The position numbers were made by a program, and so were the translations under genes. This document shows, one piece after another, positions 8,342-46,067 of a stretch of 64,000 nucleotides of DNA (positions are counted from its first letter, which is position 1; each line of letters starts with the position of its first letter). The notes beneath the pieces were generated by a model. The model made no database searches. It was given only the letters and a program-made list of their open reading frames with translations, and was not told the origin of the DNA. The DNA lies in assembly GCF_030028105.1 (NCBI RefSeq), contig NC_092375.1:54349130-54413129 (forward strand), in the 5' to 3' direction. The stretch comes from Mobula birostris (taxonomy: Eukaryota).

Positions 8342-8433
8342 TTACAAACCTGGCACTTTCCCCATTTTTTCATAGATGTCATCATTCATACTTTTTCTGA
8401 TTTCATCTGATTGTTCAGCCTTGTTTCTTTTAC
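8342..8433 (-). CDS. Tentative terminal coding exon (cytoplasmic tail) of the IgV receptor gene
   Basis: caagcag|GT acceptor, phase 1 matching the TM-exon donor; reads (G)KRNKAEQSDEIRKSMNDDIYEKMGKVPGL*; stop at 8342-8344; AATAAA on the minus strand at 8294-8299. The polypyrimidine tract is weak and the exon lies 25 kb from the TM exon. Confidence 0.5.
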
Positions 8434-8929
8434 CTGCTTGGACAACATTGTACCACCAAATTACTATTTTCAAACAAAATGGACAAAACCATATATACAT
8501 TTACACAATGAACTTAGATTATAAAGTGCAAAGTACAAATTCTTCTGGAGGAGATTCAATACCTTGACTGGTGAACAATTATAAGTGATTGTGAGTGTCA
8601 TGCTTTCACACACTTAGTTACAGAGATGAATTGAGGATCACTGAAAACTAGTTTCAATTTAACAAGTATTAAAACTATCCTACAAGTGAAACAGAAGGGC
8701 TATAGATTAAAATAGTAATTTTGAATTATATCTCAATTTTAAGAATACAATATTTGTAATCTCTCCAAATGGAAAATCGTGTGTAATGGGAAGCCTACAT
8801 AATAAAGAAACAATTGCTTTTTGCCCTCCCACAGGATATAAATAGGCCACAATGCTAGCAATTGGCTATGAGTGTACTGTGTACAAACACATGTGGCTCC
8901 AATAGAATCAATGTGGGAAGATAATCAAA

Positions 8930-10666
8930 AGATAAATCTCCAAGCTCATTATATCAGTACATATAGCATTCATAATAAGGTGGATGAACTGACGTCACAA
9001 ATAGAAATAACTGGATATGATTTGATAGCTGTTACACGCCAGCTTCTAAGGTCCAGGGTTGAATATTGCAGAGTATTTGGTAAAATTACGATCTAAGATT
9101 AGCTTTATTTGTGACATGTATACTGAAATGTTAAAGCATACAATGAAATACGTCAATGACCAAGAGAACCTGAGGATTGTGCTGGGGGCAGCCCGCAAGT
9201 GTTGGCACCAGGTGTAGCGTGCCACTGCTCACTCACCCTAACAGTATATCTTTCTGGAATGTGAGAGGAAACTGGGGCACCTGGAAGAAAACTGCACCGT
9301 CATGGGAAGAATGTACAAACTACTTACAGACAACATTGGGAATTGAACACTAATTGTGATCACTGGTGCTGTAAAGTGATTGCACTAACAGTTATACCAT
9401 CATGTCACCCCCACAATGGAAACAGAAAAAGTAATAGAGGTGCTGTTGTTCTTTTAGTAAAGGATCAGATCAGATGAGTAATGTACACTTTGTAAAATCA
9501 CCTTGTCCCAATGATCAAAATGTAGAGTTTGTTTGGATAAAGATAAGAAATAATGAAGGACAGAAGTTGCTGCTGGTTAGATTCTCTACCTGGCACTTTC
9601 ATGGTATGATTGCTATTTAAACCACATGTCTGCCCATGCCTGAATTTTGCGGAAGTCATCAAGGGAAAAAGTCATTAAAGATGCCGTCATATGCATTGAA
9701 ACAGGATTAACTAATAATCCAAAAATAAACTATTGATATTTAAATAGGTAAAATAACATTTTGTAGTTTAACCGTGAAACTCTTTTGTCAGAAACTAGTG
9801 TATTATATTTTCATAAAGCAAACAGCAATGCACAATTGACAAGAAGGCTAAAATGGAATTAGAAAATAAATGTAAAGGGTAAAATGGTACACAAGAAGTG
9901 GGACCATCCTGAAATACATAATACTTCAATGAGAGATAAAGGCAATTAGAATGATGCGAATTTGGCCAACCAAAGAATTCAAACTCAGTGTCAAATTGAA
10001 AGGAAAGGCACATAATGTGCGTGCTTAGTTCGTGGTAGGTCTGAACACAGAGAGACCTTTAGAAACCAGCAAAGAATGACTGACAAGTAATAAAGAAAGA
10101 TAATGTGAATTGTGAAAGTAAACTAGCAGGGAAAAAAATTAAAAATAAAAGACTTAGAACTTTTTGTTTGTTATGTACAGCAATATGGAAAGTGTTATTA
10201 GTAGGTCAGCAAATCACTCAAATACTGGTATTGTGAATAGTGAGAAGGATAGTCTCAGGCAACAGAAAATATTGATCAGCTGGTATATTGGGCAGAGCAA
10301 CACAGATGAAATTCAATCCAGTTAAATGCCAAGCGATGCATTTTAGGAAGTTAAATATGGATAGAGTGTACACAGTAAACAAGAGGGCCGTAGGCGGTAT
10401 CGATGATCAGAAGGACCGAGCAGTGCAAGTCCATGCAACTCTAAAGGTGGCAGAACTGGGAGACAGGCTGAAGAAGAAGACATTTGGAGTGCTTATCTTC
10501 AGCAGTCATAGCATGGGATACAAGAGCAGGGATATTACGTTACAGCTTTATAAGACATTGGTGAGGCTATCTCCAGAATATTGAGTGCAGTTTCAGTTAT
10601 CACAGTATAGAAAGTACGTGATAACTCTGGAAAAACTGCAGTGCAGATTCACCAGGATGTTGCCTA
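8930..10666 (+). mobile_element. Highly decayed CR1 LINE fragments
   Basis: Endonuclease start (IHNKVDELTSQIEITGYDLIAVT) and RT C-terminal motifs (QMKFNPVKCQAMHF; LQLYKTLVRL.PEY). Confidence 0.8.
9095..9410 (-). mobile_element. V-domain (HE1-like) tRNA-derived SINE
   Basis: Reverse-complement B box (GGGAATTGAAC, ~9338-9348) and V-domain-like core resembling 32070-32327. Confidence 0.65.
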
Positions 10667-11536
10667 GGTAATGCCCTGGTAAAGGTTTTATTGATAATCT
10701 TGCAGGATATTTCATGTAATGGTTTTTCTATAGAAGCAGTGTGTTCCACCGGCAGTGTTTGGGTTACAGTTAAAGATAAGGGATGCTTCGGAATGTGTGT
10801 TTCATCCAATCGGAGGGTGGGACTGGAAGAAGATTCTTGTGAACGTTGGGGAAGCAGCTTTTGTGACAGACTCTGGTGCAGGTCGAGGTCTTTCTCAGTG
10901 GGAGGTGGAAAGAGAAGGAGCTCGAGAGAACTGGCTGTGGGATTTGATCCGGCGGGAACATGCAGTCTGATGGAGCCCAAGAGGGGAACTTCTACTGGGG
11001 AGCAGTGAATATGAGTTGGTGCAGTGAGTACACATCAGACACAGTGGATTTTGGAAGATTTGAGCTCCACCTGTGCACATTTGACTGTTCAGTTATAACG
11101 GACCTTTTTTTGTTTTTTCTTTCTTTTCTTTAATAATTCTTCGACTAAGTTAACATTCATAAATATACTCTCTATATAATTGTACGCAGTATACGATCTG
11201 TTATTTCTTGCATGGGGCACTAAATCACGCAGTATTCGTACAAACTGGGGTTTGGGGTGGGCAGTGCATCCCAACCTTATGGGTTAGCTGGGACCAAAAT
11301 CATACACACCCTATCACAAACAAGACAAAATCTGCAGCTGCTGGAAATCCGAGCAACACACACACAAAATGCTGGAGGAACTCAGTAGGCCAGGCAGCAT
11401 TTTGTGTGTGTTGCTTGTATACACCCTAGACACGCAGAGCCTAAAAAAGGTAGGTTTCTTGCCAAGGAGTCAAGTGGCTGTTAGCAAGGGGCTAACAATT
11501 CACATTTCCAGAGACGCCCTGTAAAAAGGGGTTTCA
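10667..11536 (+). repeat. 5' LTR
   Basis: Starts GTAATGCCCTGG, ends GGGGTTTCA; colinear with 18537-19294; contains a 107-bp Penelope-derived insert. Confidence 0.85.
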
Positions 11537-14500
11537 TTGTGGGGGCTACTTTCCAGTATTGAATTTGTGGAATGCTGTCTGATTGCCCTAAGAATTGATT
11601 AAGTGGGTTTGTGTTTTAGCCTGTGTTAAATTATTGTCCAGGAAAATGATTAAGATACGTGGTTATGGCATGACAGGGATTAAGTGTTGGTGTGATTCAA
11701 AGAGATTACCCATAACTAATCAACACACATAGAATGCTGGAAGAACTCAGTGAGCCAGGCAGCACCTGTGGAAAAAAGTACAGTCGACGTTTCCTGCCAA
11801 GACCCTCTGGCTGGACTCATCTTCCACCTATCTCAGTCCTGCCGAAGGTCTTGGCCCAAAATGTTGATTGTTCTTTATTCCATAGATGCTGCCTGGCCTG
11901 CTGAGTTTCTCTAGCATTTTGAGTGTGTCGCTTGGATTTGCAGCATCTACAAATTTTCTCTTGTTTGTGATTTGCTAACTCGTAACTAATGCTTGTGTTC
12001 TGAGCTAGGTGGATATCTGCAGCCCAGATAAATTGTTGTTTAGGGTTTTAAGTACTTTTGGAGCATTAGGGAAAGTCATGGTCATTGACCAAACAGCGGG
12101 GAAAGATGTGGTGTTAGTTCAGACTAGCACTGATGTGGCATCAATGGATCTGGCTGTTACCCTTAAGAATATCCAGCAAGGCGGGGCCTTGGGCTTTCAG
12201 AGAGAGGAGAGTGTAGGCAAGGGTGCCAAACTGGAAGACAAGTTTCCCGTAGAGGGCAGAGACTATAAAGACAAGTTGCTCTTGTTTCTGCAGAGTGAGG
12301 GGAAGAAGTTGTCTGATGTTGAAGGCCAAATGAGCCCTCCAGTGAGAGGATAAAATTTGAGTTGGTGTGGCCCCTTACATTCCTGGCGGATAAACGGCAA
12401 AGAGCACCGGCAGAGAGTCAAAGTTATCAATAGCTGAGAAAGTTCTCAGGAGTGAAACCCACCCCTGAGGGGGAGGAGGAATATGAGACGGGTGGAGCAG
12501 ACCTCTCGGATGCTGGATGAGCGACAGTGCTCTGATAATGTGAAAAGACAGCAGCTGGTAGAGAGTCTAAAAGGTCCGGCTGCTGAAGTACCTAGGTCCT
12601 CGAAGGCAGAGAAAACCCTTTGCTACCTCCAAGGGCTACATGCAAGTGTTAGAAAATGTTTCTGTCATGACAGGAAATCCAATGGAGCTTACGACGGAAT
12701 TTAGGAGCGTGTTTCAGGAGAAAAGGGAGAAATTTACTGCCTACATTTTCTGGCTAGAGAGACAGCTGCTTTGCTTGTGGCGTAAAGCGGCCATCCAGCT
12801 GGCTGAGGTGAATCAATTCAGAATGGATGAAGTGGCGAAGGGCGCACAGTCACATGACATGATTGCTTTAAGCATCCTACTGTTTCATAAGACCTGCCCC
12901 CGCCATTTGTTGAGCTGATTAGAGAAGTAAGAGAGGAGGAAAATGCAATTGAGAGGCGGGAGGCCTCCTTCAGTGGGGCACAGTCCTTGGTAGTAACCTC
13001 TGTTGCTGAAGCAACCCCCAATGCCACACAGGCAGGAGTTTTGCAGGATTTCATTAAAGATTTGAGAGCTGAGGTATCCTGCTTGATGTCGACAGGTGCT
13101 GTCATCAAGCATGACAAAGCCGATAGGGAGCCGGACCCACCGATGGGATGTATGAAGCACAGGCCTGCTGTTGACCGGGGTCCCTTGAAAAGGGGAGTGA
13201 CTGGTATTGTCTGTTACTACTATGGTGCGGAGGGACACTTCAAGCGGGAATGTGAAGGACGGGAAAACCTTCAGAAAGTGAGCCCATAGTTATTGAAACA
13301 GAAGGAGAAGTCGGGAAAATTCGGAGAGACCTAGTGAGGGAACGGCCTGGCGTCTCAGGGGGAACACATTCCAATTAATGTATCAAGGAAAACACTAAAG
13401 TGCAAAATCCTATTCCTGAAGCTCCAGTGTATCCCTAAAGATTGAGGGTATTTAGGCGAGAGCCATACTTGACCCAGGGTCTCAGCTTACTCCGCTGTAC
13501 AGGTACTTCTACAACCAGTATTTGATGCATTTACCATTGACTCCACTCAGTGCCCTAGAGCTCTGGGGCCTTAGCACTGATGCCTACCCGTATGATGGTT
13601 ACTTGTCATTGAAGCTGGAGTTTTCGGAGGCAGGTATGTAGTAGCTGAGGTCCTTGATATGTTAGTGTTTGTCTGTCCGGACCCAGACGAGGAGGGTGAA
13701 GCTTCAGTTCTTGTGGGAACAAATACTCTTATAGTGAGAAGCCAGCAAGGAGAGATTGAGAGAGAGTATTCTGAAAAACTTGTCCATTCACACGGTGCTC
13801 AGAGCTGGTTTTGAGGAAGTGAAAGCCTATCCTAAGCTGGATGGTGAACAGAAATGAGGAACTGTGTGGTATACCCAGTCCAAACCCGTCACGTTATGGC
13901 CTGGGGAAGTAGCTGGAGTGACCGGAAATCCCAAGTTTCCTGGAATGTCTGATGCCGAGGCCCTCCTGTTGGATGCTGCAGAAGACCACAAAGAGGAACC
14001 ACACTTACTGGCTGGGGTATTAGTGAGGCCTGAACTGCAGAAGCCGTCGATTGTACAGGGAAACAAGATGATAGTGATGTTCAGGAACACCTTGCAGAGG
14101 GAGGTTACCCTCAGGTGGAGAATGCTGATGGCACTTTTTTTTTTCCCGGTGACTGTAATGTCTAGTTTTCCTGTGAGAAAAGCAGGAGAGAGACCATCTC
14201 CTGGAATAGGAAAGTTGACAGCCAAGTCATTCAACCTTGGTGACTCCCCGGTGCCTGGAGCTTGGAAAAGACGACGGATGGACAAGGTGTTAAAGTTTGA
14301 AGATGTTTTTTTCTACTGATGAGTTTGATGTGGGTTGTTCCAAGAGTACTCGCCCCACCATCAAAGTGACAAAGGACACCCCTTTCAGAGGAAGGTCTCG
14401 GCGAGTGGCGCATACCCAGAGGTGGAGGACATTCTGCAGCAACTGCAGGAGCTGGGATTACCACTGAGTCCAGGAGTCCCTGTGTGTCATCCATAGTGGT

Positions 14501-17500: not shown

Positions 17501-17649
17501 CGGTGTCTGAGACAGAACAAGTAGATGATGTGATAAGGAGTCAGGAAACCCTCAGATAGGCTGGCATATGTTGTGCCAGGGGAACAGAGTGTTATGCCTA
17601 TCCCCCGAGTGAGATATGTCACTAACATTGACAAATGGATTGGCAGTCC

Positions 17650-18480
17650 TGACTTAGAAACATAGAAACATAGAAAACCTATAGCACAGTACAGGCCCTT
17701 CAGCCCACAATGCTGTGGCAAACATGTACTTACTTTAGAAATTACCTAGTGTTACCCATAACCCTCTATTTTTCTAAGCTCCATGTACCTATCCAGGAGC
17801 CTCTTAAAAGACCCTCTCGTATCTGCCTCCACCACCATTGCCGGCAGCTCATTCCACGCACTCACAACTCTGCATAAAAAACTTACCCCTGACATCTCCT
17901 CTGTACCTATTTCCAAGCACCTTAAAACTGTGTCCTCTTGTGCCAGCCATAAGTGGTGTGCCACATGGATCAGTGTTGGGTACACTGTTGTTAGTCAGAT
18001 ATATATTTTATGGTCGTATATTAATGATATGGATGAAAAAGTACATGACATAATTAATAAGTTTGTAGATGACACCAACATTTGTGGTGTAGTGGATAAG
18101 GAAGAAGGTTGTCTGTCACAATGGGATTTGGACAATTGGGAAAATGGGCAGAGGAAATGGCAGGTAAAGTTTAATACACACAGGTGTAAAATGATGTATT
18201 TTGGTAAGTTAAACTAGGACAGGGCTTACACAGTGAATGGCAGGGTCCTGGGGAGTGTTACTGAACAGAGAGACCTAGGGGTACACATACATAGTTTCCT
18301 GAACATACAACACATTAGGACAGGTTGTGAAAAAGGAGTATGGCATACCTGCCTCTTGAATACATGAGTTAGGATGTCACATTGCAGTTAATTGCATAAA
18401 ATATTAATTAGAATGTATTAGGATTATTATGTGCATGCAAAAATGTTGTAATTAAGCTGGAGATGGGGCACTCACAAAAT
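17650..18480. mobile_element. CR1 fragments inserted before the 3' LTR
   Basis: Minus-strand CR1 tail (AGAAACAT repeats; WNELPAMVVEADT) followed by a plus-strand RT piece (KFVDDTNICGVVD). Confidence 0.8.
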
Positions 18481-18536
18481 TCCTTTGAAAACTGTATTAA
18501 TAAGGAGTGGTTGATAAACTTTTGGTGGGAGGGGAG

Positions 18537-27166: not shown

Positions 27167-28852
27167 TGTCATAATGGGGGGGGGGGGGGGGCAATGGGGA
27201 ACAGACCCAAATGCAAGACAGACACTGAAGTACTAGGAACAGGACAGGACAAAACTAAATGTCAGGATAGGACACAGACTAGGAGTAGGGACAGGAACAC
27301 AGACTAAACTAGGGGAGCAGGACCAGGACGAGGGACTGGGAACAAGGAGCCTGGGCATGGGCTCCGAGCCAGAGACTGGACAAAGACCCAGAACCTGGGT
27401 TTTGACTTGGGCTCAGACCCCAAAACCAGGCAAAGGTGTGGCAAAGCCCAGGTTCCTGGGGAGCGGGCAAAGGCGTGGCGAGGCCCGGGTTCCTGGGGAG
27501 CGGGCAAAGGCGTGGCGAGGCCCGGGTTCCTGGGGAGCGGGCAAAGGCGTGGCGAGGCCCGGGTTCCTGGGGAGCGGGCAAAGGCGTGGCGAGGCCCGGG
27601 TTCCTGGGGAGCGGGCAAAGGCGTGGCGAGGCCCGGGTTCCTGGGGAGCGGGCAAAGGCGTGGCGAGGCCCGGGTTCCTGGGGAGCGGGCAAAGGCGTGG
27701 CACGGCCCAGGTTCCTGGGGAGCGGGCAAAGGCGTGGCACGGCCCGGGTTCCTGGGGTGCAGGCAAAGGCGTGGCACGGCCCGGGTTCCTGGGGAGCGGG
27801 CAAAGGCATGGCACGGCCCGGGTTCCTGGGGAGCGGGCAAAGGCATGGCACGGCCCGGGTTCCTGGGGAGCGGACAAAGGCATGGCACGGCCCGGGTTCC
27901 TGGGGAGCGGGCAAAGGCATGGCACGGCCCGGGTTCCTGGGGAGCGGGCAAAGGCATGGCACGGCCCGGGTTCCTGGGGAGCGGGCAAAGGCATGGCACG
28001 GCCCGGGTTCCTGGGGAGCGGGCAAAGGCATGGCACGGCCCAGGTTCCTGGGGAGCAGGCAAAGGCATGGCACGGCCCAGGTTCCTGGGGAGCGGGCAAA
28101 GGCATGGCACAGCCCGGGTTCCTGGGGAGCGGGCAAAGGCATGGCACAGCCCGGGTTCCTGGGGAGCGGGCAAAGGCATGGCACAGCCCGGGTTCCTGGG
28201 GAGCAGGCAAAGGCATGGCACGGCCCGGGTTCCTGGGGAGCAGGCAAAGGCATGGCACGGCCCAGGGTCCTGGGGAGCAGGCAAAGGCATGGCACGGCCC
28301 AGGGTCCTGGGGAGCAGGCAAAGGCATGGCACGGCCCAGGGTCCTGGGGAGCAGGCAAAGGCATGGCACGGCCCAGGGTCCTGGGGAGCAGGCAAAGGCA
28401 TGGCAAAGGCACAATAGGGCAAGGGTACTTCAATGCAACTCCTGGGCAGGACACAGGACTCCAGTCCACAGAGGCAAGGACATGGAGGGACAGACCCAAT
28501 CACAGGGTAACAGCAATCAGGCTGGCTTACCTGACAGAGGCAAGGGACAGGAAGGGAGCTAGGCTCAAGACAGCCAGGCTCAAGGCAGCCAGTAACCTCA
28601 GCAGGCTACAGAACAGCCAACTCCATATCCTGATAACTGCATTAGCCTTCCACCAGTCAGTTGCTCTTAGGGGAAAACTGACAAGACAACCCAGCCACCA
28701 CACCTGATCCCAGGGCCACTTATATTCCCAGCCCCAAGATGAACATCAGGTGCTTATGGTTAAGTCCAACTGAAACAAGGGATAGCCGGAAGACCTGGAG
28801 TCCACGGACTGGACTGTGAACCGGAATGCGGACTTTGGACCGGACCATGACA
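27167..28852 (-). mobile_element. Solo LTR (Gypsy-type) carrying a minisatellite
   Basis: TGTCAT...ATGACA termini; exact 5-bp TSD AAGAG (27162-27166 and 28853-28857); TATAAG near 28706-28711 on the minus strand; TGCATTTGGGTC near the distal end. Orientation is inferred from these motifs. Confidence 0.85.
27429..28405. repeat. 37-bp GC-rich minisatellite, about 26 copies
   Basis: Unit AGGCCCGGGTTCCTGGGGAGCGGGCAAAGGCGTGGCG (28/37 GC); translation period of 37 aa equals 3 units. Confidence 0.97.
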
Positions 28853-33600: not shown

Positions 33601-33879
33601 AAGGGCCAGTTAAGGGCCTACCCTGGAATTCTTACAGACCAGATATGAATAACAGGTTAATTTCAATGAAGGACATTAGTGAACTTGATGAACGTTTATA
33701 GAAATCTACCACCAGAATGTGTTTCACTGATATCAATTTTTTTGCATTTCTGTTTTATTTTTTAAATTTGGATGTAATTGATCCTTTATTATCTATGTAT
33801 TGCTGAATCTCTAGTTTGTATTTAGTATAGAATCAATCTTTCTCTTAATAACAGAGCAACGTAGCTTTTCTTATTTTAC

Positions 33880-33999
33880 CTTGCCTGCTTGACCTTGTCT
33901 TACAACACTTGACAACAGCCCATGCTAAAATGATGATCAGCAGTCCTATTGCCATTCCAGCAAGTATGCCGATGAAAGTACAATTTGCCGAAGTGCGAC
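33880..33999 (-). CDS. Stalk/transmembrane exon of the IgV receptor gene
   Basis: ttctttcatag|GT acceptor and CAAG|gtaaaa donor; 120 nt, phase 1-1; reads RTSANCTFIGILAGMAIGLLIIILAWAVVKCCKTRSSRQ (hydrophobic span followed by a basic stop-transfer segment). Confidence 0.88.
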
Positions 34000-34280
34000 C
34001 TATGAAAGAAGATAATTGATGAAAGATTTTGATTAAAATACATTGTATCAATAAAAAGCTCATTCAAGAGATTAAGTACAGCGCTGGCAATCTGACACTC
34101 TCAATTTTGGTTGCATTGGATTGACAGACTTTCTGGACTATTGGAAGTTAGATCAAAATCAGAAACACTGATGCATGTTGTGAAATTTATTGTTTGTGGC
34201 AGCAGTACCATGCAAGACATTAAAAAGTTACAATAAGTTGCAATAAAAAGTAAAACAAATAACTAGTTCAAAAGGGGAAT

Positions 34281-35081
34281 GTTGTTGTTCGTCCTTCGTA
34301 GTCGAAGATGACCATGGCTTCAAAGTCAATTGGGAGATTGGTGGCTGTGGGTCCGGAGGTGACTGATGAGGCCAATCCGGGCCCTGAAGGCTCGCCCACA
34401 TGTGAGACACAAGTGGGTGGGTGCTGTCGTGGCAGTGGAACTGCTCGGGCCTTGCGCACAGCACACTTTCGTTGCGCCTCGCTGATGCGCCTGACTTCAG
34501 CTGCACGGGCTGTTGTGGTGATCTTGCTGCGCCAAGCTGGACGGTCGAGGGCAGGCGTCTCCCACGTGTTGATGTCAACACCCAGGCCTTTGAGGGACGC
34601 TTTCAGGCAGTCTTTGTAACGTTTCATCTGCCCCCCGACTGAGCGCTTGCCCTGACACAGTTCTCCGTACAGCAGCTGCTTAGGCAATCGGCTGTCTGGC
34701 ATTCTGACCACATGTCCAGCCCACCTGGCTTGGGCTTTCAGCAGGAGGGTGTAGATGCTGCAGAGCCCAGCTCGTTCCAGGATTTCTGTGTCGGGGACTT
34801 TGTCCTGCCACCCGATGTGGAGGAGTCTGCGGAGACAGCTCAGGTGAAAGTGGTTGAGCTGTTTGGCGTGTCTGCTGTAGACAGTCCAGGTCTCGCTGGC
34901 GTAAAGGAGGTGGTAAGGACCACTGCACAGTAGACCTTCAGCTTGATGGTAAGGCTGAGTCCTCTCCGCTCCCAGACATTCTCACGGAGTCTCCCAAAGG
35001 TGGTGCTGGCTTTGGCAATCCTGTTGTTGACCTCAGCGTCTATGTTCACTGCGCGAGAGAGTATGCTGCCCAGGTAGGTGA
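34281..35081 (-). mobile_element. 5'-truncated RTE (BovB-like) LINE
   Basis: FTYLGSILS..RIAKAS.TFGRL..VW; RMPDSRLPKQLLYGEL..GKRSVGGQ.KRYKDCLK; GAACAACAAC tail; exact 11-bp TSD AAAAGGGGAAT (34270-34280, 35082-35092). Confidence 0.92.
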
Positions 35082-35399
35082 AAAAGGGGAATAACTTTGT
35101 GTTCATGAGTTTGTGGACTGTTCAGAGACCTGATTGACATTCCCATTGACACCCAATATACTTTATTCACATTGTTTAGCTGTTACATGGTAGTATAATA
35201 AATTTTCCAGTGAGTTTTTGAGTTTCTAGGGAGCATGGGAAACTGAGTGGTAGTTCAAAGGGAGCACAGGAGATAGGATACTGGTAGATTTAAAGGAATC
35301 ATGGGAAATGGGTCCCTGGGTAAATTTAAAGGAAGTGTGGGAAACAGCAGGTTATTGGAGTTCTACTCTAACACAATAGCATGGAGCATCGCACAGGTG

Positions 35400-38330
35400 T
35401 GGTAGAATACCCACAATATCTCTCCAAATTCCTCTCCCAGTTGAAGATGAAGAGAGATTTTACAGAGCTAGGTAGAAAGCAGGACCTCCTGGGCAGTAAT
35501 CTCTGAATTGCTGCCTGTGTCATGCACCAGTGAGGGTAATAATAGGACGATTTGGCAGATGAATGTGTGGCTGAGGAATTAGTGCAGAGGCAGAGGTTCA
35601 GATTTCTGGGTCATTGGGAAGGTATAAGCTGTCAAAAGGGATGGGTTACACCTGAACCTGAGGGGGATCAATGTCCTTCCAGGAGGATTTAAACTAATTT
35701 GACAGGGGATAGGAACCAGGGTAATAGGGCTGAGGATGGGGTGGTTGGTTTACTAACAGAGGCGGTATGTAGTGAGACTGCTCGGTAGGACAGGCTGATG
35801 ATAGGGCAAAATTGCAATAGATGGAATGAGTTGCAATGTAAAAATGTGACAAAATCAAGAAGGGTGTTGAATACAGGACTGAAGGTGTTATATTTGAATG
35901 CATGCTGTATACAGAATAAGGTAGATGAACTTCCAGCACAGTTTTAGATTGAAGTGTATGACATTGTGGGCATTACTGAATTGTGGCTGAAAGAAGATTA
36001 TAGCTGGGAGCTTAAAGTCCAAGAATACACAATGTATTGAAAGGATAGACAGGTAGGCAGAGGGGGTGGTGTGGCTCAGATGATTAAAAAAATAGAAATC
36101 AAATCGTTAGGAAGAAGTGACATAGGATCAGAAAGTGTAGAATCATTGTGAGTAGAGTTAAGAATCTGCAAAGGTAAACAGAACCTGATGGAAGTTATAC
36201 ACAGACAACCAAACAGTAGCAAATATGTGGTCTACAAGTTACAATGGGAGATAGAAAATGCATGTCAAAAGGGCAATGTTACAATAGTCATGGGGGATTT
36301 CAATATGCAGGTAAATTGAAGATATCAGGTCGATGCTGGATCCTAAGAGGGGTGACTTGTCGAATGCCTACAAGGCGGCTTTTCAGAGCAGCTCATGGTT
36401 CATCCCACTAGGGGACCAGCTGTTCTGGATTGGGCATTGTGCTATGAACCAGAATTCATTAGAGTGCTTAAGGTAAAGGAACCCTTAGGAGACAGTGATC
36501 ATAATATGATAGAATTCACCCTGCAATTTAAGAAGGAGAAGCAAAAGTCAGATGTATCAGAATTAAAGTGGAGTAAAGGGAATTACAAAGGCATGTGAGA
36601 GGAGCTGGCCAAAATTGATTGGAAGGGAACACTAACAGGGATGATGGCAGAGCAGCAATGGCTGGAATTTCTAGGAGCAATTCAAAAGGCACAAGATGGA
36701 TACATCCCAAAGAAAGAAGTATTCTGTAGGCACAATGATGCATCCATGGCCGACAAGAGAAGTCAAAGCTATCATAAAAGCCAAAGAGAGAGCATGACAT
36801 AGAGCAAAAATTAGTCAGAAGTTTGAGGATTGGGAAACCTTTAAAAACAACAGAAGGCAGCTAAGAAAGTCATAAAGAAGGTAGAGATGAAATACAATGG
36901 CAAGCTAGCCAACAAAATTAAAGGGGAAGCCAAAGGCTTCTTCAGATACAGTAGATAAAGTGTAAAAGAGAGGTGAGAGTAGTTATCAACTTCTGGAAAA
37001 TTATGCTGGAGAGGTAGTAAAGGAGGAGAAGGAAATTAAAGATAAACTGAATAAGTATTTTGCATCAGTCTTCTCTTTTGAAGACACAAGCAGTATGCTG
37101 GAAGTGCGAGAGTGTCGGGGAGGCAGAGGTGAGTGAAGTTGCCATTACTAGGAAGAAGGTGCTTGGGAAACTGGAAGTTCTGAAATTTGGTAAGTCTTTT
37201 GGACCAGATGGTCTACATCCCAGGGTTCAGAAGACGAGGCTAAAGAGAACATGAAGGCATTAGTAATAATCTTTCAAGAATCTCTAAATTCTGGCATGGT
37301 TCCAGAGGACTGGAAAATTACAATTGTCATTCCACTCTTCAAGAAGGGAGAGAGGCAGAAGAAAGGAAATTATAGTCCAGTTAGTCTGATCTCAGTGGCT
37401 GGAAAGTTATTGGAGTCTATTGTTAAGGATGTGGTTTCAGGGTATATGAAAGCACATACTAAAATAGGCTGAAGTCAGCATGGTTTCCTAAGAGAAAATA
37501 TTGCCTGAAAAATCCATCTAAATTCTTTGAAGAAATAACAAGCAGGATAGACAAAGGATGTTGTGGACCTGGATTTTCAGAAGCCCTTTGACAAAATGCA
37601 ACACAAGAGGATGCTTAACAAGTTAAAAACCTCTGGCATTATAGGAAAGATACTAGCATGAACAGAACATTGGCTGATGGGCAGGAGGCAAAGTTTGAGA
37701 ATAAAGGGAACCTTTTCTGGATGGCTGATAGTGACTAGAGGTATTCCACAGTGTTGGGACCACTTCTTTTCGCATTATATGTCCATGGTTTGGGTGATGG
37801 AATTGATGGCTTGGTGGCCAAGTTTGTGGACAATAGAAAGATAGGTGGAGGGACAGTTAGAATTGAGGAAGCAGAGAGACTACAGAAGGACTTAGATTAG
37901 GAGAATGGGCAAAGAAGTGGCAGATGGAGTGTACTGCCGTGCACTTTGGCATCTGAGGTGCAAAGGGACTTGGGAGTTTTCATGCAAGATTCCCTAAAGA
38001 TTAGGAAGATCAAACCTGCAGATTGAGTCAGTGGTGAGGAAGGCATATGGAATGTTAGCATTCACTTTAAGAGGACTAGAATATAAAAGTGAGGATGTAA
38101 TGTTGAGGTTTTATAAAGGACTGTTGAGGCTTGACTTGGAGTATTGTGAGCAGTTTTGGGCCCATTATCTAAGAAAAGATGTGCTGACATTGGAGAGGGT
38201 TTAAAGAAAGTTCACAAAATGATTCTGGGCTTATCATATGAGGAGTGCTTGATGGCTCTGGGCCTTTACTCAGTAGAGTTCTGTAGAATGAATGAGGATC
38301 TCGTTGAAACCTATCATTCTTACCTTTGGT
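35400..38330 (+). mobile_element. Near full-length but decayed CR1 (ORF1 end plus ORF2)
   Basis: Esterase-like ORF1 end; endonuclease (VMGDFNM; PTRGPAVLDW; LGDSDHNMIEF); RT (MVPEDWKI..PLFKKG..GNYSPVSL). Confidence 0.85.
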
Positions 38331-38789
38331 CCCATTGTTCTTGAGATGCTGGCTTAGGTTGAACTTTGCTTCTGTGCTCCATTCTTTATCTTCTGTCTTC
38401 ATTCCCCCAAAACCAACACCTCCTTTGAGAAGTTAATGAGAAACATGGATAGGCATCATATTATTCATGTAGATTTTCAGGAATTGCATTTTAAGGTGAC
38501 TGTGTGAAAATTCAAAGGAGGTGTGCTCATTGTCACATTCTTAAGTGAGACAGTGAGCAGCCGGACGTTGTGGTCCACTTCAATACCAATGACATAGGTA
38601 GGAAGGGTGATGAGGTCCTGTAAAGTGATTCAGGGAGTTATGTGCTGAGTGAAATGGTAGGACTTCAAGAGTTGTGATCTCAGGATTGCTATCCATGCCA
38701 TGTGCTAGTGAGGTCAGAAATAGGATGATCACTGGAGATGATGCAGGAGGGAGGGCTTCAGATTTTTGAATCATCGGGCACTCTTCCAG

Positions 38790-39600
38790 GGAAGGTGGGA
38801 AAAATGGTAGATGGAATTTAAATTAGACAAGTGTGAGGTAATTTGGGAAGAAAAATCAGGGTAGGACCAGGGTACCACAGTGGGTGGTAGGGCACTGAGG
38901 AGTGCGGTAGAACAAAGGGGTCTGGGAATACTGATCCATAATTCTTTGAAAATAGGGTAGATAGGGTCATAAAGAAATTTCTTGGCATGTTGACTTTCAT
39001 AAATCAGATTGTTGAGTACAGGAGATGGGATGTTATGTTGAAGTTGTATAAGACATTGGTGAGGCCCAGTTTGGAGTATTGTGTGCAGTATTGGTCACCT
39101 ACCTACAGGAAAGATCGAAAGAGTGCAGAGAAAATTTAGAAAGCTGTTGCCAGGACTTGAGGACCTCAGTTATAAGGAAAGGTTGAATAGGTTAGAACTT
39201 TATTCCCTAGGGTGTAAAAGAATGAGAAGAGATTTGATACAGATATGCAAAATTTTGAGGGGTATAGATAGGGTAACTGAAAGCAGATTGGGTGTGCTTG
39301 GGTGCAGCTGGGTGAGACTAGAATTTGAGGTAATGGGTTAAAGGTGAAAGGTGAAATGTTTAAAGAGAACATGAGGGGGAGCTCCTACACTCAGAGGGTA
39401 GTGACAGTGTGGAATAAGCTGCCAGTGGAATTGGTGGACGTGAGTTTGATTTCAACATTTAAGAGTACTTTGGATAGGTACTTGGATGGGAGGGGTATCG
39501 AGGGCAATGATCTAGGCTGATACGACTCAGCAAAGTAATAGTTCGGCATGGACTAGATATGCCAAAGAGTCTATTTCTGTGCTGGAGTGCTCTATGAATC
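38790..39600 (+). mobile_element. CR1 3' fragment
   Basis: LYKTLVRPSLEYCVQYWSP; ERVQRKF; WNKLP motif. Confidence 0.8.
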
Positions 39601-41589
39601 TATGAGCAGGGAAGTTTATCGTTATCCAGGGTGGCGGGTTGCTGGAAAATGCTGCCCAGAGTGATGGTAGAGGCAGAGAAAAGAGGGACATGGATCATGA
39701 GCAGAAAAGAAGAGATTAGTTTAATTCAGTAACTTTAGCTTAATTAGTTTAGCGCAACATTGTGTGAAAGCCCTTTTTCTGTGTTCTAATTAGGACGTGG
39801 TTGTATGTTGAGCATGATTAGTTATTATCCCGCATCTTTGCTACCTGCTCCAGAACAGTGGAGAAACTCTGCATGACGGGGTGGGAAACACTAATGAGAA
39901 AACTTGCAAAGCCCTGCAAGATATGGTTAGGAAGATGAGTCAGGTTTGGAGCTTGGTGTGACTCATCGGTGGGCTACACTACCTGTTTCCCAGGGACTAA
40001 TCCTATCAGATGTGACAGTTGATGCACACAGGCCAACCGCGAAGGAAGTCATTCAAGCAGGCCAGGCATGTTTTGGATTATACTTTACGTTATTTGGAAT
40101 TTCATAAAAGAGAAGTACAAGGCATGTTTTACCCATGGATCAGCACTTTTTATTATTCATGTGCGACACACACAAAAGTACTGACTGCACTGGTCAGTGC
40201 AAGTGACGTGCTACTCTGCAGTAGCACCCAGTGCTGAGTCAGGGGGGCTCCAGGTCAGCCTGAGAATAGGGATCATATCTGACACAAACCCTTTCAGTTG
40301 TAGTGCTGGTCCTGGAATGCACCTGAACATTACTGTATGCTGGAACAAATCTAAAGTAAAATACTATGAGTGTCACCTCGGCCAATTAATTCCACTGAGA
40401 CCCCCCAAAAAATAGTCTTGAAAAAAGCAACTTGAAAAGGAAATACAAATGAAATGCAAGCTAAGGTGTGTTGAGGAAAGATTATTTAAAATAATGATTT
40501 CAGAATGGAATAATTATTGAGACTTATAGACGAATCAATGTGCACAAGCTTGATGTTCAAAAGCATAGGGTAATGTACAGAAGGCATGCTCTAAATATTG
40601 ATGTCGCTGCTCCCAGGAGGGTCTACTTTTAACCTGCATGAGTACAGAAGAAATAAAATGAATATTCTATGTGACATCAGGAGTTTCCTCTGCTGCTCCT
40701 TAAAATCATGGCAGATCACATATATCATCCCATATTCTGCCCACTTCCCATCTTGCCTGATTCTATTACCGTCCAGAAATTCTTCAGTCTCAAGTTTTAA
40801 CTAGATATATGTTCTGGGCTTCCACAGCCTTTGAAGAGGGTATTGCAAAGATTTATAACTTCTCATACCCAAGTTGCTAACCTCTTATCACAGCATAGAT
40901 ATGTACAGCACAGAAATAGCCCTCTGGTTTTCATGTCAATGCTGATATTTTTCCATGTCAACACATTTGCGCACAATAGCCTTGAATCTTTTGATGCCTT
41001 GCATATTTAATTACCTGCCTAAATATCACTTAAATGTAGTGATTATATCTGATTCCACCACTTTCCCTGGCAGCACCTTCCAAATCTGCATGCTGTAACA
41101 AAAAAGACGCCCTCCTCAAATCCCCTTTAACACCCCTTCCCCTCACCTGAAAGCTATGTCCTCTTATTATTGTCTACTACTGTGGGGAAGATACCTTAAC
41201 TATCTATCCTATCCATGTCTCTTGTAAATGTATTCCTTTATCAGATCATCTCCACAGCATCATTTCTGCAAGAAAAATGGGTCCAGTCTATCAAATAGTT
41301 CCACATAACCAAAGCCCTCTTGACCTAGGCAGCTTCCTAGTGAATTTCTTTCATGCTCTCTCCAAAGCAACCACATCCTTCTTATACTGTAGCAACCAGA
41401 ACTGCACATGGTGCTGCAGTGCAGTCTAACAGCGTTTAGTCAAGTTGCACAAATTCTGAGACTATGCTCCTTAGTTCTAGACTTCCTGGTCCAAGGAAAC
41501 AGCCTCTCAGAATTTATCCTTATCCTGCCCCCAGGTCAATGAGGACACCTTTCATTCTTCTAAACTCCGGGACAGCGGTCCTTCCTACT

Positions 41590-42230
41590 CACCGTGTCCT
41601 TGTTGGGCAAACCATAAATACAAGAGATTCTGCAGATGCCAAGAATCTTAAGCAACACACAAAAATGTTGGTTGAACCCAGAAAGTCAGGCAGCAGATAT
41701 GACAGAATGAATAGTCAGCGTTTCAGGATGCGAACGGAAATGAGCATGCACCAGAATAAGAAGGTGGGGGAGATGAAGGATTATGGGCTGTCAGGTGATA
41801 GGTGAGACCAGGTGAGGGGAAAAGTGGGTGCGTGGTTGAGAGGGGTGAGAAGCTGGAAGGTGATTGGTGGAAGAGGTAACGGGCTAAAGAGGAAGGAATT
41901 TAATAGGAGAGAACAGTGGACCATCGAAGAGGGAGATCAGATGTTGTGATGGGCAGGTAGGATGGGAGAAGAGGAGAAAGGGTAACTAAATGGGGAATCA
42001 GAATGAGGAAAGGGAAGGAGAGAAGTGGGAAGGGTGGAGAAATTACAGGAAATTAGAGAAATCAATGTTCATGCCATCAGTTTGGAGGCTACCCAGGCAG
42101 AATATGAGGTGTTGTCCCTCTTACCTGAGAGTAGCTTCATTGTGGCAGCAGAGAAGGCCATGGACAGACATGATTGATCAGAAGTGGGAAGTCCAATTGA
42201 ATGGGCAGCCAATGGGAGATCCTGTCTCTT
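41590..42230 (-). mobile_element. Penelope-like 3' fragment
   Basis: Decayed terminus and GIY-YIG C-terminal remnant matching 58071-58560. Confidence 0.7.
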
Positions 42231-42900
42231 CCACTTATCCCCTCCCAACTTCTTAATTCATTCCCCCTCCCCCCCCAGCCACCTATCTTCCCCTCACCTA
42301 TCACCTGACATCTTGTACCCCTTCCCCTTATTGAAGAAACTGTTCATCCCAGTGAGCAATCTAGCTTTATTTTGATTCCAAAGCAGGTATATCCTCTCTT
42401 ATCAATGGAGACCTAAACTCCCAGCAAAACAGATGCAGCTTGTACAATTGTAGCAAGGCTTTTGCAATTTTATATTCAATTTCCCTTGCAACAAATACCA
42501 GCTTACCATGTGCCTTCTGCACAGCAGGGACTCTCTCTGCTGCTCATGTGCCATCATGTCCAGATCCCTTTATGCACCAACACCTGCTAATTTCTCACTG
42601 GTCAAAACATTGCTTGTCTATTTTTCACGCTGAAGTGAACAACTTCACATTGTTTATTTAGCTGTCATCTTCTTGCCTCTTTGCTTAAGTGTTGGTACCT
42701 TTGCATACTTCTTACAACTGTCCCCCCACACCCCCCCCCCCAGCAAATCAAAGCGTTACAACACAGGTAATCTGACATTTCAAATGTGCAGCTCTGATGT
42801 CAGATTCAACTAGTTTTCTTGATCTTGTGTGCTCCCCAATACCCCTTCAGTTTGTCACGAATCTTTACCACCACCTTTAACCTAGCGCCACTATCATAAG

Positions 42901-45230
42901 ACCAAGACCATAAGACAAAGGAGCAGAAGTTGGCCATTCGGCCCATCGAGTCTGCTCCACCATTTTATCATGAACTGATCTATTCTCCCATTTAGTCCCA
43001 CTCCCCCACCTTCTCACCATAACCTTTGATGCCCTGGCTACTCAGATACCTATCAATCTCTGCCTTAAATACACCCAATGACTTGGCCTCCACTGCCGCC
43101 CGTGGCAAAAAATTCCATAGATTCACCACCCTCTGGCTAAAAAAATTTCTTCGCAATTCTGTTCTGAATGGGCACCCTTCAATCCTTAAGTCATGCCCTC
43201 TCGTACTAGACTCCCCCATCACGGGAAACAACTTTGCCACATCCACTCTGTCCATGCCTTTCAACATTCGAAATGTTTCGATGAGGCCTCCCCTCATTCT
43301 TCTAAACTCCAAGGAATACAGTCCAAGAGCGGACAAACGTTCCTCATATGTTAACCCTCTCATTCCCAGAATCATTCTAGTGAATCTTCTCTGTACCCTC
43401 TCCAGTGTTAGCACATCTTTTCTTAAATCCTCCAAAAAACAGAGTCCATCTCTGCAATCATGCTGCTGCTGTTAGTGGCTAAAGGGATCAGCGGGTATGG
43501 AGGGAAGGCTGGTACAGGGTTCTGAGATGGATTATCAACCATGATCATACTGAATGGCGGTGCAGGCTCGAAGGGCCGAATGGCCTACTCCTGCACCTAT
43601 TTTCTATGTTTCTATGTTTCTATAAGGAGACGAAAACTGCCCACAATACTCCAAGTGAGGTCTCACCAGCGCCTTATAGAGCCTCAATATCACATCCCTG
43701 CTCCTATACTCTATTCCTCTAGAAATGAATGCCAAGATTGCATTCACCTTCTTCACCACCGACTCAACCTGGAGGTTAACCTTAAGGGTATCCTGTATGA
43801 GGACTCCCAAGTCCCGTTGCATCTCAGAACTTTGAATTCTCTCCCCATTTAAAAAATAGTCTGCCCGTTTATTTCTTCTGCCAAAGTGCATAACCATACA
43901 CTTTCCAACATTGTATTTCATTTGCCACTTCTTTGCCCGATCTTCCAATCTATCCAAGTCTCTCTGCAGACTATCTGTTTCCTCAGCACTACCGGTCCCT
44001 CCACCTATCTTCGTATCATCAGCAAACTTAGCCACAAAGCCATCTATTCCGTAATCCAAATTGTTGATGTACAATGTAAAAAGAAGCGGCCCCAACACAG
44101 ACCCCTGTGGACCACCACTGGTAACCAGCAGGCAACCAGAATAGGATCCCTTTATTCCCACTCTCTGTTTCCTGCCAATCAGCCAATGTTCTATCCACAT
44201 ATGTAACTTTCCCGTAATTCCATGGGCTCTTATCTTATTAAGTAGCCTCATGTGTGGCACCTTGTCAAAGGCCTTCTGAAAATCCAAATATACAACATCT
44301 ACTGCACCTCCCTTGTCTAGCCTACTGGTAATTTCCTCAAGAAATTGTAATAGGTTTGTCTGGCAGGATTTTCCTTTAAGGAATCCATGGTGAGTTCTGC
44401 CTATCTTGTCATATGCCTCCAGGTACTCTGTAACCTCATCCTTGACAATCGGCTCCAACAACTTCCCAACCACCGATGTCAAGCTAACAGGTCTATAATT
44501 TCCTTTTTGCTTCCTTGCCCCCTTCTTAAATAGCGGAGTGAGATTTGCAATCTTCCGGTCCTCCAGAACCATGCCAGAATCTATTGACTTTTGAAAGATC
44601 ATTGCTAATGCCTCTGCAATCTCCACAGCTACTTCCTTCAGAACATGAGTGTGCATTCCATCTGGTTCGGGAGATTTATCTACCCTTAGACTATTCAGCT
44701 TCCTGAGTAGTTTCTCTGTCCTAATTGTGACCGCGCACACTTCCCTTCCCTGCCACCCTTGAGTGTCCAGTATACTGCTGATGTCTTCCTCAGTGAAGAT
44801 TGATGCAACATACTCGTTCAGTTCCCCTGCCATCTCCTTATGTCCCATTACAATTTCTCCAGCATCATTTTCTATCAGTCCTATACCTACTCTCACCTGT
44901 CTTTTACTCTTTATATACTTGAAAAAGCTTTTAGTATCCTCTTTGATATTATTTGCTAGCTTCCTTTCATAGTTAATCTTTTCCCTCTTAATGACCTTCT
45001 TAGTTTCCTTCTGTAAGCTTTTAAAAACTTCCCAATCCTCTGTCTTCCCACTAATTTTTGCCTCCTTGTATGCCCTCTCCTTTGCTTTAACTTTGGCTTT
45101 GACTTCTCTTGTCAGCCACGGTTGCATTCTTTTCCCATTCGAAAATTTCTTCTTTTTTGGAATATACCTGTCTTGCACCTTCCTCACTTCTCGCATAAAC
45201 TCCAGCCACTGCTGCTCTGCGTCCTTCCCG
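42901..45230 (-). mobile_element. Young 5'-truncated CR1 with an open RT frame
   Basis: ORF 43604-45196 (530 aa: NYRPVSLTSVVGK, VVYLDFQKAFDKV, PQGSVLGP, FADDTK) continues in 42992-43435; split by a plus-strand CR1 tail insert at about 43428-43623. Confidence 0.92.
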
Positions 45231-45566
45231 CCAGTTCATCGTTCCGCTTTTCCTAGCTTCCACCTTAACACAGATTGCTCTATCCTTTGTACTGTCCTCC
45301 CCACTCCCCCCCCCCCCCATCTGTTCTCTGGACCCTAATACTTGTGTATTATTCCCTTCTCCAATGAAAGGCCACCAATCTGAAACATTAAACTGCGTTT
45401 CTATCTCCACAAATACTAATTGACTAGCTGGGCATTTCCAGCGTCATCTGCTTTAGTATTTTGTTTTTCCCCCAATAGCTTTATTTTATTAAAATAATGA
45501 AACAGTTATGTTTATTAATCATCTAAAGAGTCTAACAGCACACATCGACTGTCGGGACAAACTCAC

Positions 45567-45911
45567 TGAACACGTTCACTTCGGTCTTCTGGGTGAACTC
45601 TTCTCCATTCTGACCCGTGACAGTGCAGTAATATGTCCCAGAATCGTTTATCTGCATATTTCTGAGGGAGAGTGAGCCGTTCGGGTACAAAAAAGCCCGG
45701 TGTGAGTAGTTGAAGAGATAAGTACTCGAACTGCCTGCATCTGATATCAACTTGCCGACGTGGCGCGAAGTTATCCCATTGAAATACTTCCATTCCACTG
45801 TCTGTATCTGTTCAGAAATGCCAGTGACTGGTACTGGCAGGAATATACTCCCAGTGACTGTTCCATTTAAAACGTTAGAGCTCGTTTCGATGATTGCCAC
45901 TTGCATTACAA
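45567..45911 (-). CDS. IgV-domain exon (CD2/SLAM/CEACAM-like V-set) of a single-pass receptor
   Basis: tatttacag|TT acceptor and TTCA|gtgagt donor; 345 nt, phase 1-1; motifs VLNGTVTGSIFLP, VEWKY, RAFLYPNGSLSLRNMQINDSGTYYCTV, TEVNV. Confidence 0.93.
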
Positions 45912-46012
45912 CTGTAAATAAACGGGCACAGGAATAAAAAAAACTGATTAATATCCCAACCGAGTATGGAAAAAAAAAGACAACGGTGACCAGTGTATCG
46001 GCCATGGGTTAC

Positions 46013-46067
46013 CTTGTAGCCAACAACTGCAGAACGTCATCATCGTGGACTTTCCGGACCACTCCAT
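46013..46067 (-). CDS. Signal-peptide exon of the IgV receptor gene
   Basis: acgATGG Kozak context; MEWSGKSTMMTFCSCWLQ + G|gtaacc donor (phase 1); a 101-nt intron joins it in frame to the IgV exon. Confidence 0.8.

Follow-up and report, generated by a model that had tools for sequence, protein, structure and literature searches.

Co-signalling receptors of sharks and rays have reportedly been catalogued only in recent years, with a survey of the CD28 family in 2024 and one of PD-1 in 2025. Members of the CD28 family carry the CDR3 motifs MYPPPY, EIP(PP), or PPP…GxG (Quiniou et al. 2024, PMC11599192), and tail motifs such as EYEDM in CD28X and YMNM in CD28 are proposed PI3K sites (PMC11599192). 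CD28-family synteny blocks include the cd28/ctla4/icos cassette, fsd1-stap2, and pudp-sts-anos1 (PMC11599192). Absent from the 2024 survey (PMC11599192) is the gene family described here, which surveys missed because its V domain is not CD28-like, although its layout and tail motif are. The representative that we analyzed lies in a 64,000-nucleotide stretch of Mobula birostris DNA (henceforth termed the window) as an intact gene of five coding exons. We estimate a probability of about 0.6 that its product, a glycoprotein with a single V domain and a conserved YxxM motif, acts as a cell-surface recognition or co-signalling receptor, a function that we infer.

The gene occupies positions 46067 to 8342 of the minus strand, and all introns are in phase 1 with GT-AG borders. 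Coding exon 1 (46013..46067) begins with an ATG at 46067-46065 in a strong start context (A at -3, G at +4), encodes most of the signal peptide (MEWSGKSTMMTFCSCWLQ), and ends in phase 1 at the donor G/GTAACC; over residues 1-18, the orthologue from Mobula hypostoma is 100% identical to it. Exon 2 (45567..45911) provides the V-set Ig domain in 115 codons and is 97% identical to the M. hypostoma protein. Exon 3 (38324..38422), located by tblastn with four orthologues and by its splice sites, comprises 99 nt between the borders AG / GTAAGA, in phase 1 on both sides. Its translation, RGVGFGGMKTEDKEWSTEAKFNLSQHLKNNGTK, yields a stalk of 33 aa (GVGFGGMKTEDKEWSTEAKFNLSQHLKNNGTK) that contains two sites for N-glycosylation (sequons). 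Exon 4 (33880..33999) encodes a membrane-proximal cysteine (codon 33982-33980, within the motif NCT), a transmembrane (TM) helix devoid of charged residues (FIGILAGMAIGLLIIILAWAVV), and the juxtamembrane segment KCCKTRSSRQ. The cytoplasmic tail (KRNKAEQSDEIRKSMNDDIYEKMGKVPGL) is encoded by exon 5 (8342..8433), which contains the YEKM motif at 8374-8363, terminates with a stop codon at 8344-8342, and is 80% identical to the Hemitrygon tail. Reading of the sequence further points to AATAAA at 8294..8299 (minus strand), 43-48 nt past the stop, as a candidate polyadenylation signal. Reading through the exon 4 donor (33848..33879, minus strand) would add QGKIRKATLLCY before a stop; this matches the way in which the truncated M. 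hypostoma gene model ends and may represent either a tail-less isoform or an annotation artefact.

Together, the five exons form a 711-nt coding sequence for 236 aa with seven sequons. The initial annotation had proposed four of these exons, at 46067-46013, 45911-45567, 33999-33880, and 8433-8342 on the minus strand. All four are real, with AG/GT borders in phase 1, and their splice indeed gives 612 nt, i.e., 203 aa plus stop, with the sequons NGT, NYS, NGS, NDS, and NCT. The fifth coding exon at 38422-38324 had been overlooked, and the protein consequently measures 236 rather than 203 aa. With 97% (V domain) to 100% identity to M. hypostoma and retention down to Callorhinchus, the exons are conserved far beyond chance.

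Evidence at the transcript level came from a 620-nt contig in run X1, in which one piece (38322-38422) fits the borders of the stalk exon and then departs from the genome. The remaining 64 nt of this contig explain the depth of the TM-exon bin (3.89 x 64/164 = 1.52). Because high-copy intronic repeats dominated the read alignments across 33700-38600, this evidence relies on the matched pieces and the depth arithmetic. A spliced transcript joining the stalk exon to the TM exon is thus present in at least one run, as a single contig from a run presumed to be RNA. Of the sequence words in the exon 1-2 stretch, a fraction of 0.36 also occurs in run X1. Splice sites and the open frame predict the junctions 46013/45911, 45567/38422, and 33880/8433. 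Run X2 contains an unspliced contig across 33845-34203; as the contigs from runs X2 and X6 are both unspliced and 3-5% diverged (DNA, pre-mRNA, or a related species), they are uninformative on splicing. Because nearly every orthologue model contains the stalk exon and its borders match the spliced contig, we consider the 236-aa protein the main product.

Twelve cartilaginous fishes, ranging from devil ray to elephant shark (Mobula, Hemitrygon, Pristis, Narcine, two skates, four sharks plus Cetorhinus, and Callorhinchus), each contain one orthologue, with lengths of 217-249 aa and E-values of 1e-70 to 1e-111, the next match being at E 1e-4. The profile search returned nothing comparable beyond cartilaginous fishes, with no bony-vertebrate match better than E 1e-4. 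Within its own genome the gene is single copy and forms no paralogue cluster: the other matches are exons of 37% and 31% identity on other chromosomes, the closer of which (C6) presumably belongs to a HEPACAM-like gene. All orthologue entries are unnamed or carry automatic LOC names, one of them “VSTM5-like”. We found no paper naming these identifiers, and a literature search for SLAM/CD2 in cartilaginous fish returned nothing relevant. The gene is previously unstudied. The suggestion of an uncharacterised elasmobranch receptor is therefore borne out as regards the uncharacterised LOC entries and too narrow in its taxonomic range, which extends to all Chondrichthyes including the chimaera. Identities to the Hemitrygon sequence are 67% in Pristis, 52% in Heterodontus, and 42% in Carcharodon for this family, compared with 80, 66, and 67%, respectively, for VSTM5. 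By this measure the family diverges more rapidly than VSTM5 does in these three species, a behaviour typical of immune-type receptors.

The product is a 236-aa type I membrane glycoprotein composed of a signal peptide, a V-set domain, a stalk, a TM helix, and a 40-aa tail. The V domain scores 36.5 bits against the Pfam V-set family (PF07686, cut-off 26), and its AF2 model shows a nine-strand sandwich with a pLDDT of 84. A match to Receptor_2B4 (PF11465) is marginal, at 22.8 bits against a cut-off of 21 in a single protein, and in a whole-genome search with this profile only the VSTM5 exon passed E 0.01, exon 2 being not significant. The C strand retains its Trp and the F strand its YYC. In all 13 family sequences the B-strand Cys is replaced by Leu, and the F-strand Cys, retained in 12 of the 13, is therefore unpaired within the domain. 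Behind YYC, the window encodes TVTGQNGEEFTQ, corresponding to the family pattern T[VI]T.Q[NS]GEE; the FG loop GQNGEEFTQ is conserved, with QNGEE nearly invariant. Outside the V domain, the stalk region is predicted to be disordered in the full-length Hemitrygon model (pLDDT below 50), in which the TM helix is present. The membrane-proximal Cys occurs in 12/12 elasmobranch rows; in Callorhinchus it is shifted by five residues towards the N-terminus.

The tail ends in DDIYEKMGKVPGL and contains a single tyrosine within DDIYEKM, with Met at +3 and no Thr at -2; neither an ITIM nor an ITSM was found in it. All ten complete orthologue models share the motif [DE]D[IVT]Y[EV][KSN]MG[KRM]V[PL], of which YE[KSN]M is conserved across the family (YENM in Scyliorhinus); in condensed form, this conserved acidic tyrosine motif reads DD[IV]YExMG[KR]VP. 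A look-alike search with stalk, TM, and tail alone gave best scores of 0.75-0.76, equivalent to noise. As a short linear motif, YxxM may occur fortuitously, and it also serves as a sorting signal.

Structural comparison of the V domain with the AlphaFold database by Foldseek retrieved SLAMF6, SLAMF8, SLAMF5, VSTM5, CEACAM15, and CD48 as best matches, with a TM-score of 0.88 and an E-value of 1.3e-9 for SLAMF6. VIA-align, applied to solved V domains, placed the fold in a tie with nectin, JAML, CD166, TIGIT, SLAM, and CD2 (Z 13.7-15.7), and its structural alignments with CD2, CD58, and CD48 showed 24-26% identity. Since Foldseek favors SLAM, VSTM5, and CEACAM and VIA-align ties adhesion-type V domains, no family can be assigned by fold, and the V fold cannot separate immune co-receptors from plain adhesion molecules. 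Sequence searches of the PDB with the V domain and with the family profile were likewise uninformative for family assignment, because the generic I-set E-F strand motif, as found in contactin and Robo, dominated the matches. The proposal of a CD2/CEACAM-like V domain therefore stands for the sequence features and not for the fold ranking, in which the second aligner ties many V folds.

The protein lacks hallmarks of four described families. VSTM5 itself is encoded on another chromosome by an exon at C8:71.93 Mb that is 95% identical to Hemitrygon VSTM5, and orthology is contradicted by separate clades (95/87 support) and by the co-existence of both genes in the same species. Precomputed Pfam lists assign VSTM5_C (PF28389) to 11/11 VSTM5 proteins and to none of this family, and the hhalign alignment to VSTM5 does not extend beyond the V domain. 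Against the SLAM/CD2 family stand the absence of a C2-set exon from the introns, a 33-aa stalk predicted to be disordered, and a tail without an ITSM. Apart from the V exon itself, a six-frame scan for Ig motifs across the window and 100 kb on each side yielded only two V exons of a neighboring gene, both CD200-like, which confirmed that no Ig exon lies between V and TM. HEPACAM members have a V plus C2 ectodomain and a long cytoplasmic tail, whereas this protein has no C2 domain and a 40-aa tail, and the presumed HEPACAM-like exon lies on another chromosome. Of the CD28-family motifs MYPPPY, EIP(PP), and PPP…GxG, none is present behind YYC. This agrees with the initial annotation, which had noted the lack of MYPPPY and, at the same time, a CD28-like layout. 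The latter was recovered as well: a single V domain and a stalk Cys are combined with a TM helix and a short tail bearing a tyrosine motif (YxxM), and the core reading of that annotation is supported.

If the product is a recognition or co-signalling receptor, the V domain with its near-invariant QNGEE FG loop would bind a conserved ligand on another cell, and the stalk cysteine may link two chains. Upon phosphorylation, YxxM would dock PI3K p85-type SH2 proteins, as in CD28, ICOS, and CD28X, while the same motif in its unphosphorylated state, as YxxΦ, could mediate endocytosis through AP-2, as in CTLA-4. Shorter or tail-less isoforms could arise if the stalk exon is skipped or exon 4 is read through. 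A more specific version, which we put forward tentatively, is that of a co-stimulatory or checkpoint-type receptor of cartilaginous fishes with no surviving bony-vertebrate counterpart. Such a protein would unite a disulfide-less V domain of the CD2/SLAM/VSTM5 type with a PI3K-docking tail of the CD28X/CD28 type, and would represent an ancient, separate branch of lymphocyte co-signalling, maintained in single copy next to genes of the CD200 family from before chimaeras and sharks diverged.

The protein could instead be a plain adhesion or membrane-organising molecule resembling VSTM5, its closest relative by sequence, in which the tail tyrosine serves as a YxxΦ endocytosis or sorting signal only. 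Such a role fits the profile-profile match that links signal peptide and V domain to VSTM5 (probability 98%, 26% identity), the VSTM5 clusters, which share the most language-model features with the gene (206/256), and a V fold on a par with nectin-1, CD166, and JAML, all adhesion molecules. In being conserved and present as a single copy, the gene also departs from the pattern of expanding immune receptor families. We nevertheless regard a purely adhesive function as rather doubtful: stalk, TM, and tail do not align with VSTM5, the VSTM5_C domain is missing, and the entire stretch of 10 residues surrounding the tyrosine, with its Met at +3, is kept from ray to chimaera, which exceeds what YxxΦ needs.

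Improbable, in our view, is a diverged co-orthologue of a named bony-vertebrate gene, for which BTLA would be a candidate by position, CD28X or CD28H by tail, and CD7 as a further option. Human BTLA adjoins CD200, and CD200-like V exons lie 47-50 kb downstream of the gene in the ray, the next gene in Callorhinchus being CD200/nectin-like; exons resembling ATG3 and CCDC80 occur on the same chromosome, and the EYEDM tail motif and single-V layout of CD28X are similar. The ATG3 and CCDC80 markers, however, are located at 47.2-47.4 Mb, 7 Mb from the gene, and the protein has neither the canonical V disulfide nor any of the PPP, EIP, MYPPPY, ITIM, or ITSM motifs. BTLA, CD28, and CTLA-4 also fall outside the top 50 structural matches, and bony vertebrates yielded only the weak matches described above. 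Highly improbable is a stalk-less, four-exon protein of 203 aa as the main product in the ray. Skipping of the 99-nt exon leaves the frame unchanged, and the annotated isoform X2 of Scyliorhinus canicula (201 aa) has an identical layout, yet the main models of 11/12 species carry the stalk and the sole spliced contig joins it to the TM exon. The junction 45567/33999, initially taken as the main one, is thus interrupted by the stalk exon and corresponds to the stalk-skipping isoform instead.

Should a recognition or co-signalling receptor prove to be leukocyte-expressed and PI3K-coupled, the family would constitute a further, independent lineage of co-stimulation at the root of adaptive immunity in jawed vertebrates and also a marker for the CD200 region paralogon. 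As a general adhesion molecule, it would simply be an orphan IgSF gene with a correct annotation. The points of practical use to annotators are the five-exon structure and the truncation of the M. hypostoma model.

Among known systems, VSTM5 resembles the gene as a small type I protein of ~200 aa with a single 2B4-like V-set and no C2 domain, and is matched over signal peptide and V domain with a profile-profile probability of 98% (E 9e-14) and a Foldseek TM-score of 0.76 at 24-27% identity; it lacks, however, the stalk exon, the membrane-proximal Cys, and the YxxM tail, all three of which the gene has. With the CD2/SLAM family the gene shares an N-terminal V domain without the B-strand Cys, but whereas that family has a C2-set domain, an ITSM, and a gene cluster, the gene has none of these and keeps the F-strand Cys. 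CD28X and CD28H of the CD28 family show the same succession of one V domain, a stalk Cys, a TM helix, and an acidic Y-E-x-M tail, from which the gene differs in a V domain without disulfide or CDR3 proline motifs and in its five coding exons with a separate stalk exon. CD7, finally, resembles the gene in size (about 240 aa), single V domain, stalk exon, TM segment, and ~40-aa tail with YEDM, but combines them with a canonical disulfide-bonded V domain and a stalk of proline-rich repeats.

Splicing by script of the four exons first read on the minus strand (46067-46013, 45911-45567, 33999-33880 and 8433-8342) bore out the initial annotation in that they join in frame, into 612 nt encoding 203 aa plus stop, with phase 1 at every junction and all five proposed N-glycosylation sequons. 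Introns in this four-exon model all run from GT to AG, and the ATG is flanked by A at -3 and G at +4. Querying with the V exon matched four ray proteins of 217-249 aa, each longer than 203 aa, including one from Mobula hypostoma whose V domain is 97% identical. In all four, about 33 additional residues separate the V domain from the transmembrane (TM) segment, and aligning the proteins to the window by tblastn mapped this stretch to 38423-38322. Splice borders (AG/GAGGTG… and …ACCAAAG/GTAAGA) delimit a further minus-strand coding exon, the third of five, at 38422-38324 (99 nt, phase 1 at either border), extending the coding sequence to 711 nt, 236 aa and seven sequons.

The added exon encodes a stalk and no Ig domain. 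In the full-length AlphaFold model of the Hemitrygon orthologue, a confident V domain (pLDDT about 85) precedes residues 135-180, where pLDDT is <50 and secondary structure is absent; the TM helix comes next. Because the missed exon is a stalk and six-frame Ig-motif scans of the window and 264 kb around it gave no further Ig exon in the gene, the reading that a C2 exon is absent was correct, whereas the proposed 45567/33999 junction is not the principal one. It corresponds to an annotated isoform in Scyliorhinus canicula, where isoform X2 (201 aa) lacks exactly the stalk exon that isoform X1 (224 aa) contains. The gene was correctly discovered, with one exon absent from its model.

Splicing was assessed in coded sequencing runs, of which X1 and X2 are two small runs from one study whose RNA status was guessed. 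Among sampled words of 45400-46200, a share of 0.36 was present in X1 and 0.35 in X2, approximately the expectation from exon 2 alone; for the stalk exon the shares were 0.40 and 0.60. Contigs of four runs were aligned over 33700-38600. Letters 65-165 of a 620-nt X1 contig match exactly 38322-38422 with one mismatch, a span comprising the stalk exon plus two letters common to the next exon, and the contig does not cover the flanking intron bins. The X1 depth of 1.52 in the TM-exon bin equals 3.89 x 64/164, the 64 letters being those that precede the stalk piece, and this calculation also accounts for the remaining bins. We read this contig as a spliced transcript in which 38324 is joined to 33999; its other 455 letters would fit exon 2 (345), exon 1 (55) and 55 nt of 5' UTR. 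Contigs from X2 and a further run, X6, are unspliced, 3-5% diverged and uninformative on splicing, and junctions 46013/45911, 45567/38422 and 33880/8433 are based on orthologue gene models, not direct reads.

The description of the gene as extending across 38 kb of repeats is fair, since its introns contain a LINE-type reverse transcriptase ORF (43604-45196, minus strand, intron 2), a minisatellite and high-copy repeats. The 37-bp minisatellite (27429-28405; 26.4 copies, 97% match, consensus GGCAAAGGCATGGCACGGCCCGGGTTCCTGGGGAGCG) sits in the 25-kb intron that separates the TM exon from the tail exon and leaves every one of its six reading frames open. In intron 3 (35300-38300), very high-copy interspersed repeats reach summed contig depths of 1e4 to 5e5 in all four aligned runs, with many internal joints in the contigs. 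Upstream of the gene, a GC-rich block (0.53-0.59) holds a nearly full-length minus-strand LINE-type retroelement (51294-55467) with an Exo_endo_phos ORF (54730-55467, 245 aa) and an RVT_1 plus zf-RVT ORF (52009-54282, 757 aa), and an additional reverse transcriptase ORF lies on the plus strand at 57350-58153.

In an exhaustive phmmer search, only a few proteins aligned continuously over the entire V domain, the remainder being giant multi-Ig proteins with repeated matches to a generic E-F strand motif. Specific family members were named by cluster look-up and profile search, in which they scored E-values of 1e-111 to 1e-70 and the next matches, two teleost multi-Ig proteins, 1e-4. Single entries were found in Mobula hypostoma, Hemitrygon akajei, Pristis pectinata, Narcine bancroftii, Rhinoraja longicauda, Leucoraja erinacea, Heterodontus francisci, Scyliorhinus canicula, Mustelus asterias, Carcharodon carcharias, Cetorhinus maximus and Callorhinchus milii; the 4.0 Gb ray genome studied here has one copy, with the window at C7:54349130-54413129. 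Public annotation knows the gene only as LOC entries, all named "uncharacterized protein LOC…" or automatically "-like" (RAGE-like, PSG22-like, VSTM5-like), and these identifiers are named in no paper in the literature searched, where the gene is undescribed. The gene belongs to an unnamed orphan IgSF family that, as far as the searches reach, is confined to cartilaginous fishes. Several public models (P0001, P0004, P0155, P0156, P0160) appear erroneous or alternative at one terminus: the Mobula hypostoma and Pristis (X3/X1) models finish with read-through into an intron or with alternative acceptors, the Narcine X2 tail is unrelated, and the 370-aa Leucoraja model has about 150 unrelated residues fused at its N-terminus. 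In Mobula hypostoma, read-through of the exon 4 donor leaves the real tail missing.

In an alignment of 13 sequences, the B-strand cysteine position is Leu in all rows, the C-strand Trp is invariant, the F-strand Cys is present in 12 of 13 and the FG loop Q-[NS]-G-x-E is nearly invariant. The N-glycosylated stalk varies in length and leads to a Cys immediately ahead of the TM helix in every row (in the chimaera, five residues earlier), an uncharged helix and a basic, Cys-containing juxtamembrane stretch. The C-terminal block [DE]D[IVT]Y[EV][KSN]MG[KRM]V[PL] occurs in each of the 10 models whose tail is complete. The gene is intact, conserved and single-copy, with at least one spliced transcript; its product, a type I glycoprotein, has a single V domain followed by a flexible stalk, a membrane-proximal Cys and a tail carrying a conserved YxxM motif. 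The near-invariance of the FG loop suggests that the V domain would bind a conserved partner via its GFCC' face, and the membrane-proximal Cys may give covalent dimers. By analogy with proposals for CD28 and CD28X, the phosphorylated tyrosine motif might recruit p85-type SH2 proteins, while the unphosphorylated motif could direct sorting as a YxxΦ signal, like that of CTLA-4. Because the TM helix is uncharged, pairing with DAP12 or FcRγ-type adaptors seems disfavoured. Stalk skipping and exon 4 read-through could yield shorter or tail-less forms.

In Callorhinchus, the whole gene occupies 5.9 kb and the next gene encodes a 412-aa protein with V-set and C2-set_2 domains, whose V exon has nectin-3 and CD200 as top PDB matches. 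In our ray genome the best match to that exon is found 47 kb ahead of the window start, where two minus-strand CD200-like V-set exons (C7:54301713-54302036 and 54299097-54299408, same chromosome as the gene; 47-50 kb before the window, 2.6 kb apart) reflect a V-V arrangement or else a tandem duplication; the Atlas label of this locus is CD200 family protein. Three more CD200-like V exon pairs lie on this chromosome at 53.78, 64.83 and 68.98 Mb, and ATG3-like (Autophagy_act_C) and CCDC80-like (DUF4174) exons sit side by side at 47217073-47217545 and 47340199-47379195. In human 3q13.2, ATG3 and CCDC80 flank CD200, BTLA and CD200R. Together, these neighbours place the gene in an IgSF-rich region of the CD200 type that has been conserved since chimaeras and elasmobranchs split, the tie to the 3q13.2 markers being loose at 7 Mb distance.

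Likeness to VSTM5 appears in the automatic name of one orthologue, in structural matches at 24-27% identity and in language-model matches. Identity with it is rejected: the second-best match to the V domain in our genome is true VSTM5 on another contig (C8:71932207-71932473, at 71.93 Mb; 95% identical to Hemitrygon VSTM5), both genes co-exist within the same species, the VSTM5_C domain occurs in 11 of 11 VSTM5 hits and in no member of the studied family, profile-profile alignment (probability 98%, 26% identity) extends no further than the signal peptide and V domain, and the two form separate clades. This VSTM5 exon and a HEPACAM-like V exon (C6:188495768-188496094) are the sole other sequences in our genome resembling the V domain.

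Ranking by fold cannot settle the family, because VIA-align ties nectin-1, CD166, JAML, SLAMF6, CD2, TIGIT and CD48, all at Z 13.7-15.7. The V domain does fit SLAM/CD2, in lacking the B-strand Cys, marginally in its Receptor_2B4 score (22.8 bits versus a cut-off of 21) and in its best AlphaFold DB matches, SLAMF6/8/5; despite this, membership is rejected, as the gene has no C2 domain, ITSM or gene cluster. The CD28 family's nine members are defined by one V domain, motifs in CDR3 (MYPPPY, EIP, PPP…GxG) and motifs in the tail (Quiniou et al. 2024, PMC11599192). Our gene shares their common layout and a CD28X-like Y-E-x-M tail, but its V domain bears no family hallmark and lacks the canonical disulfide, and membership is likewise rejected. 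It is one more single-V type I IgSF receptor, not a new kind of system.
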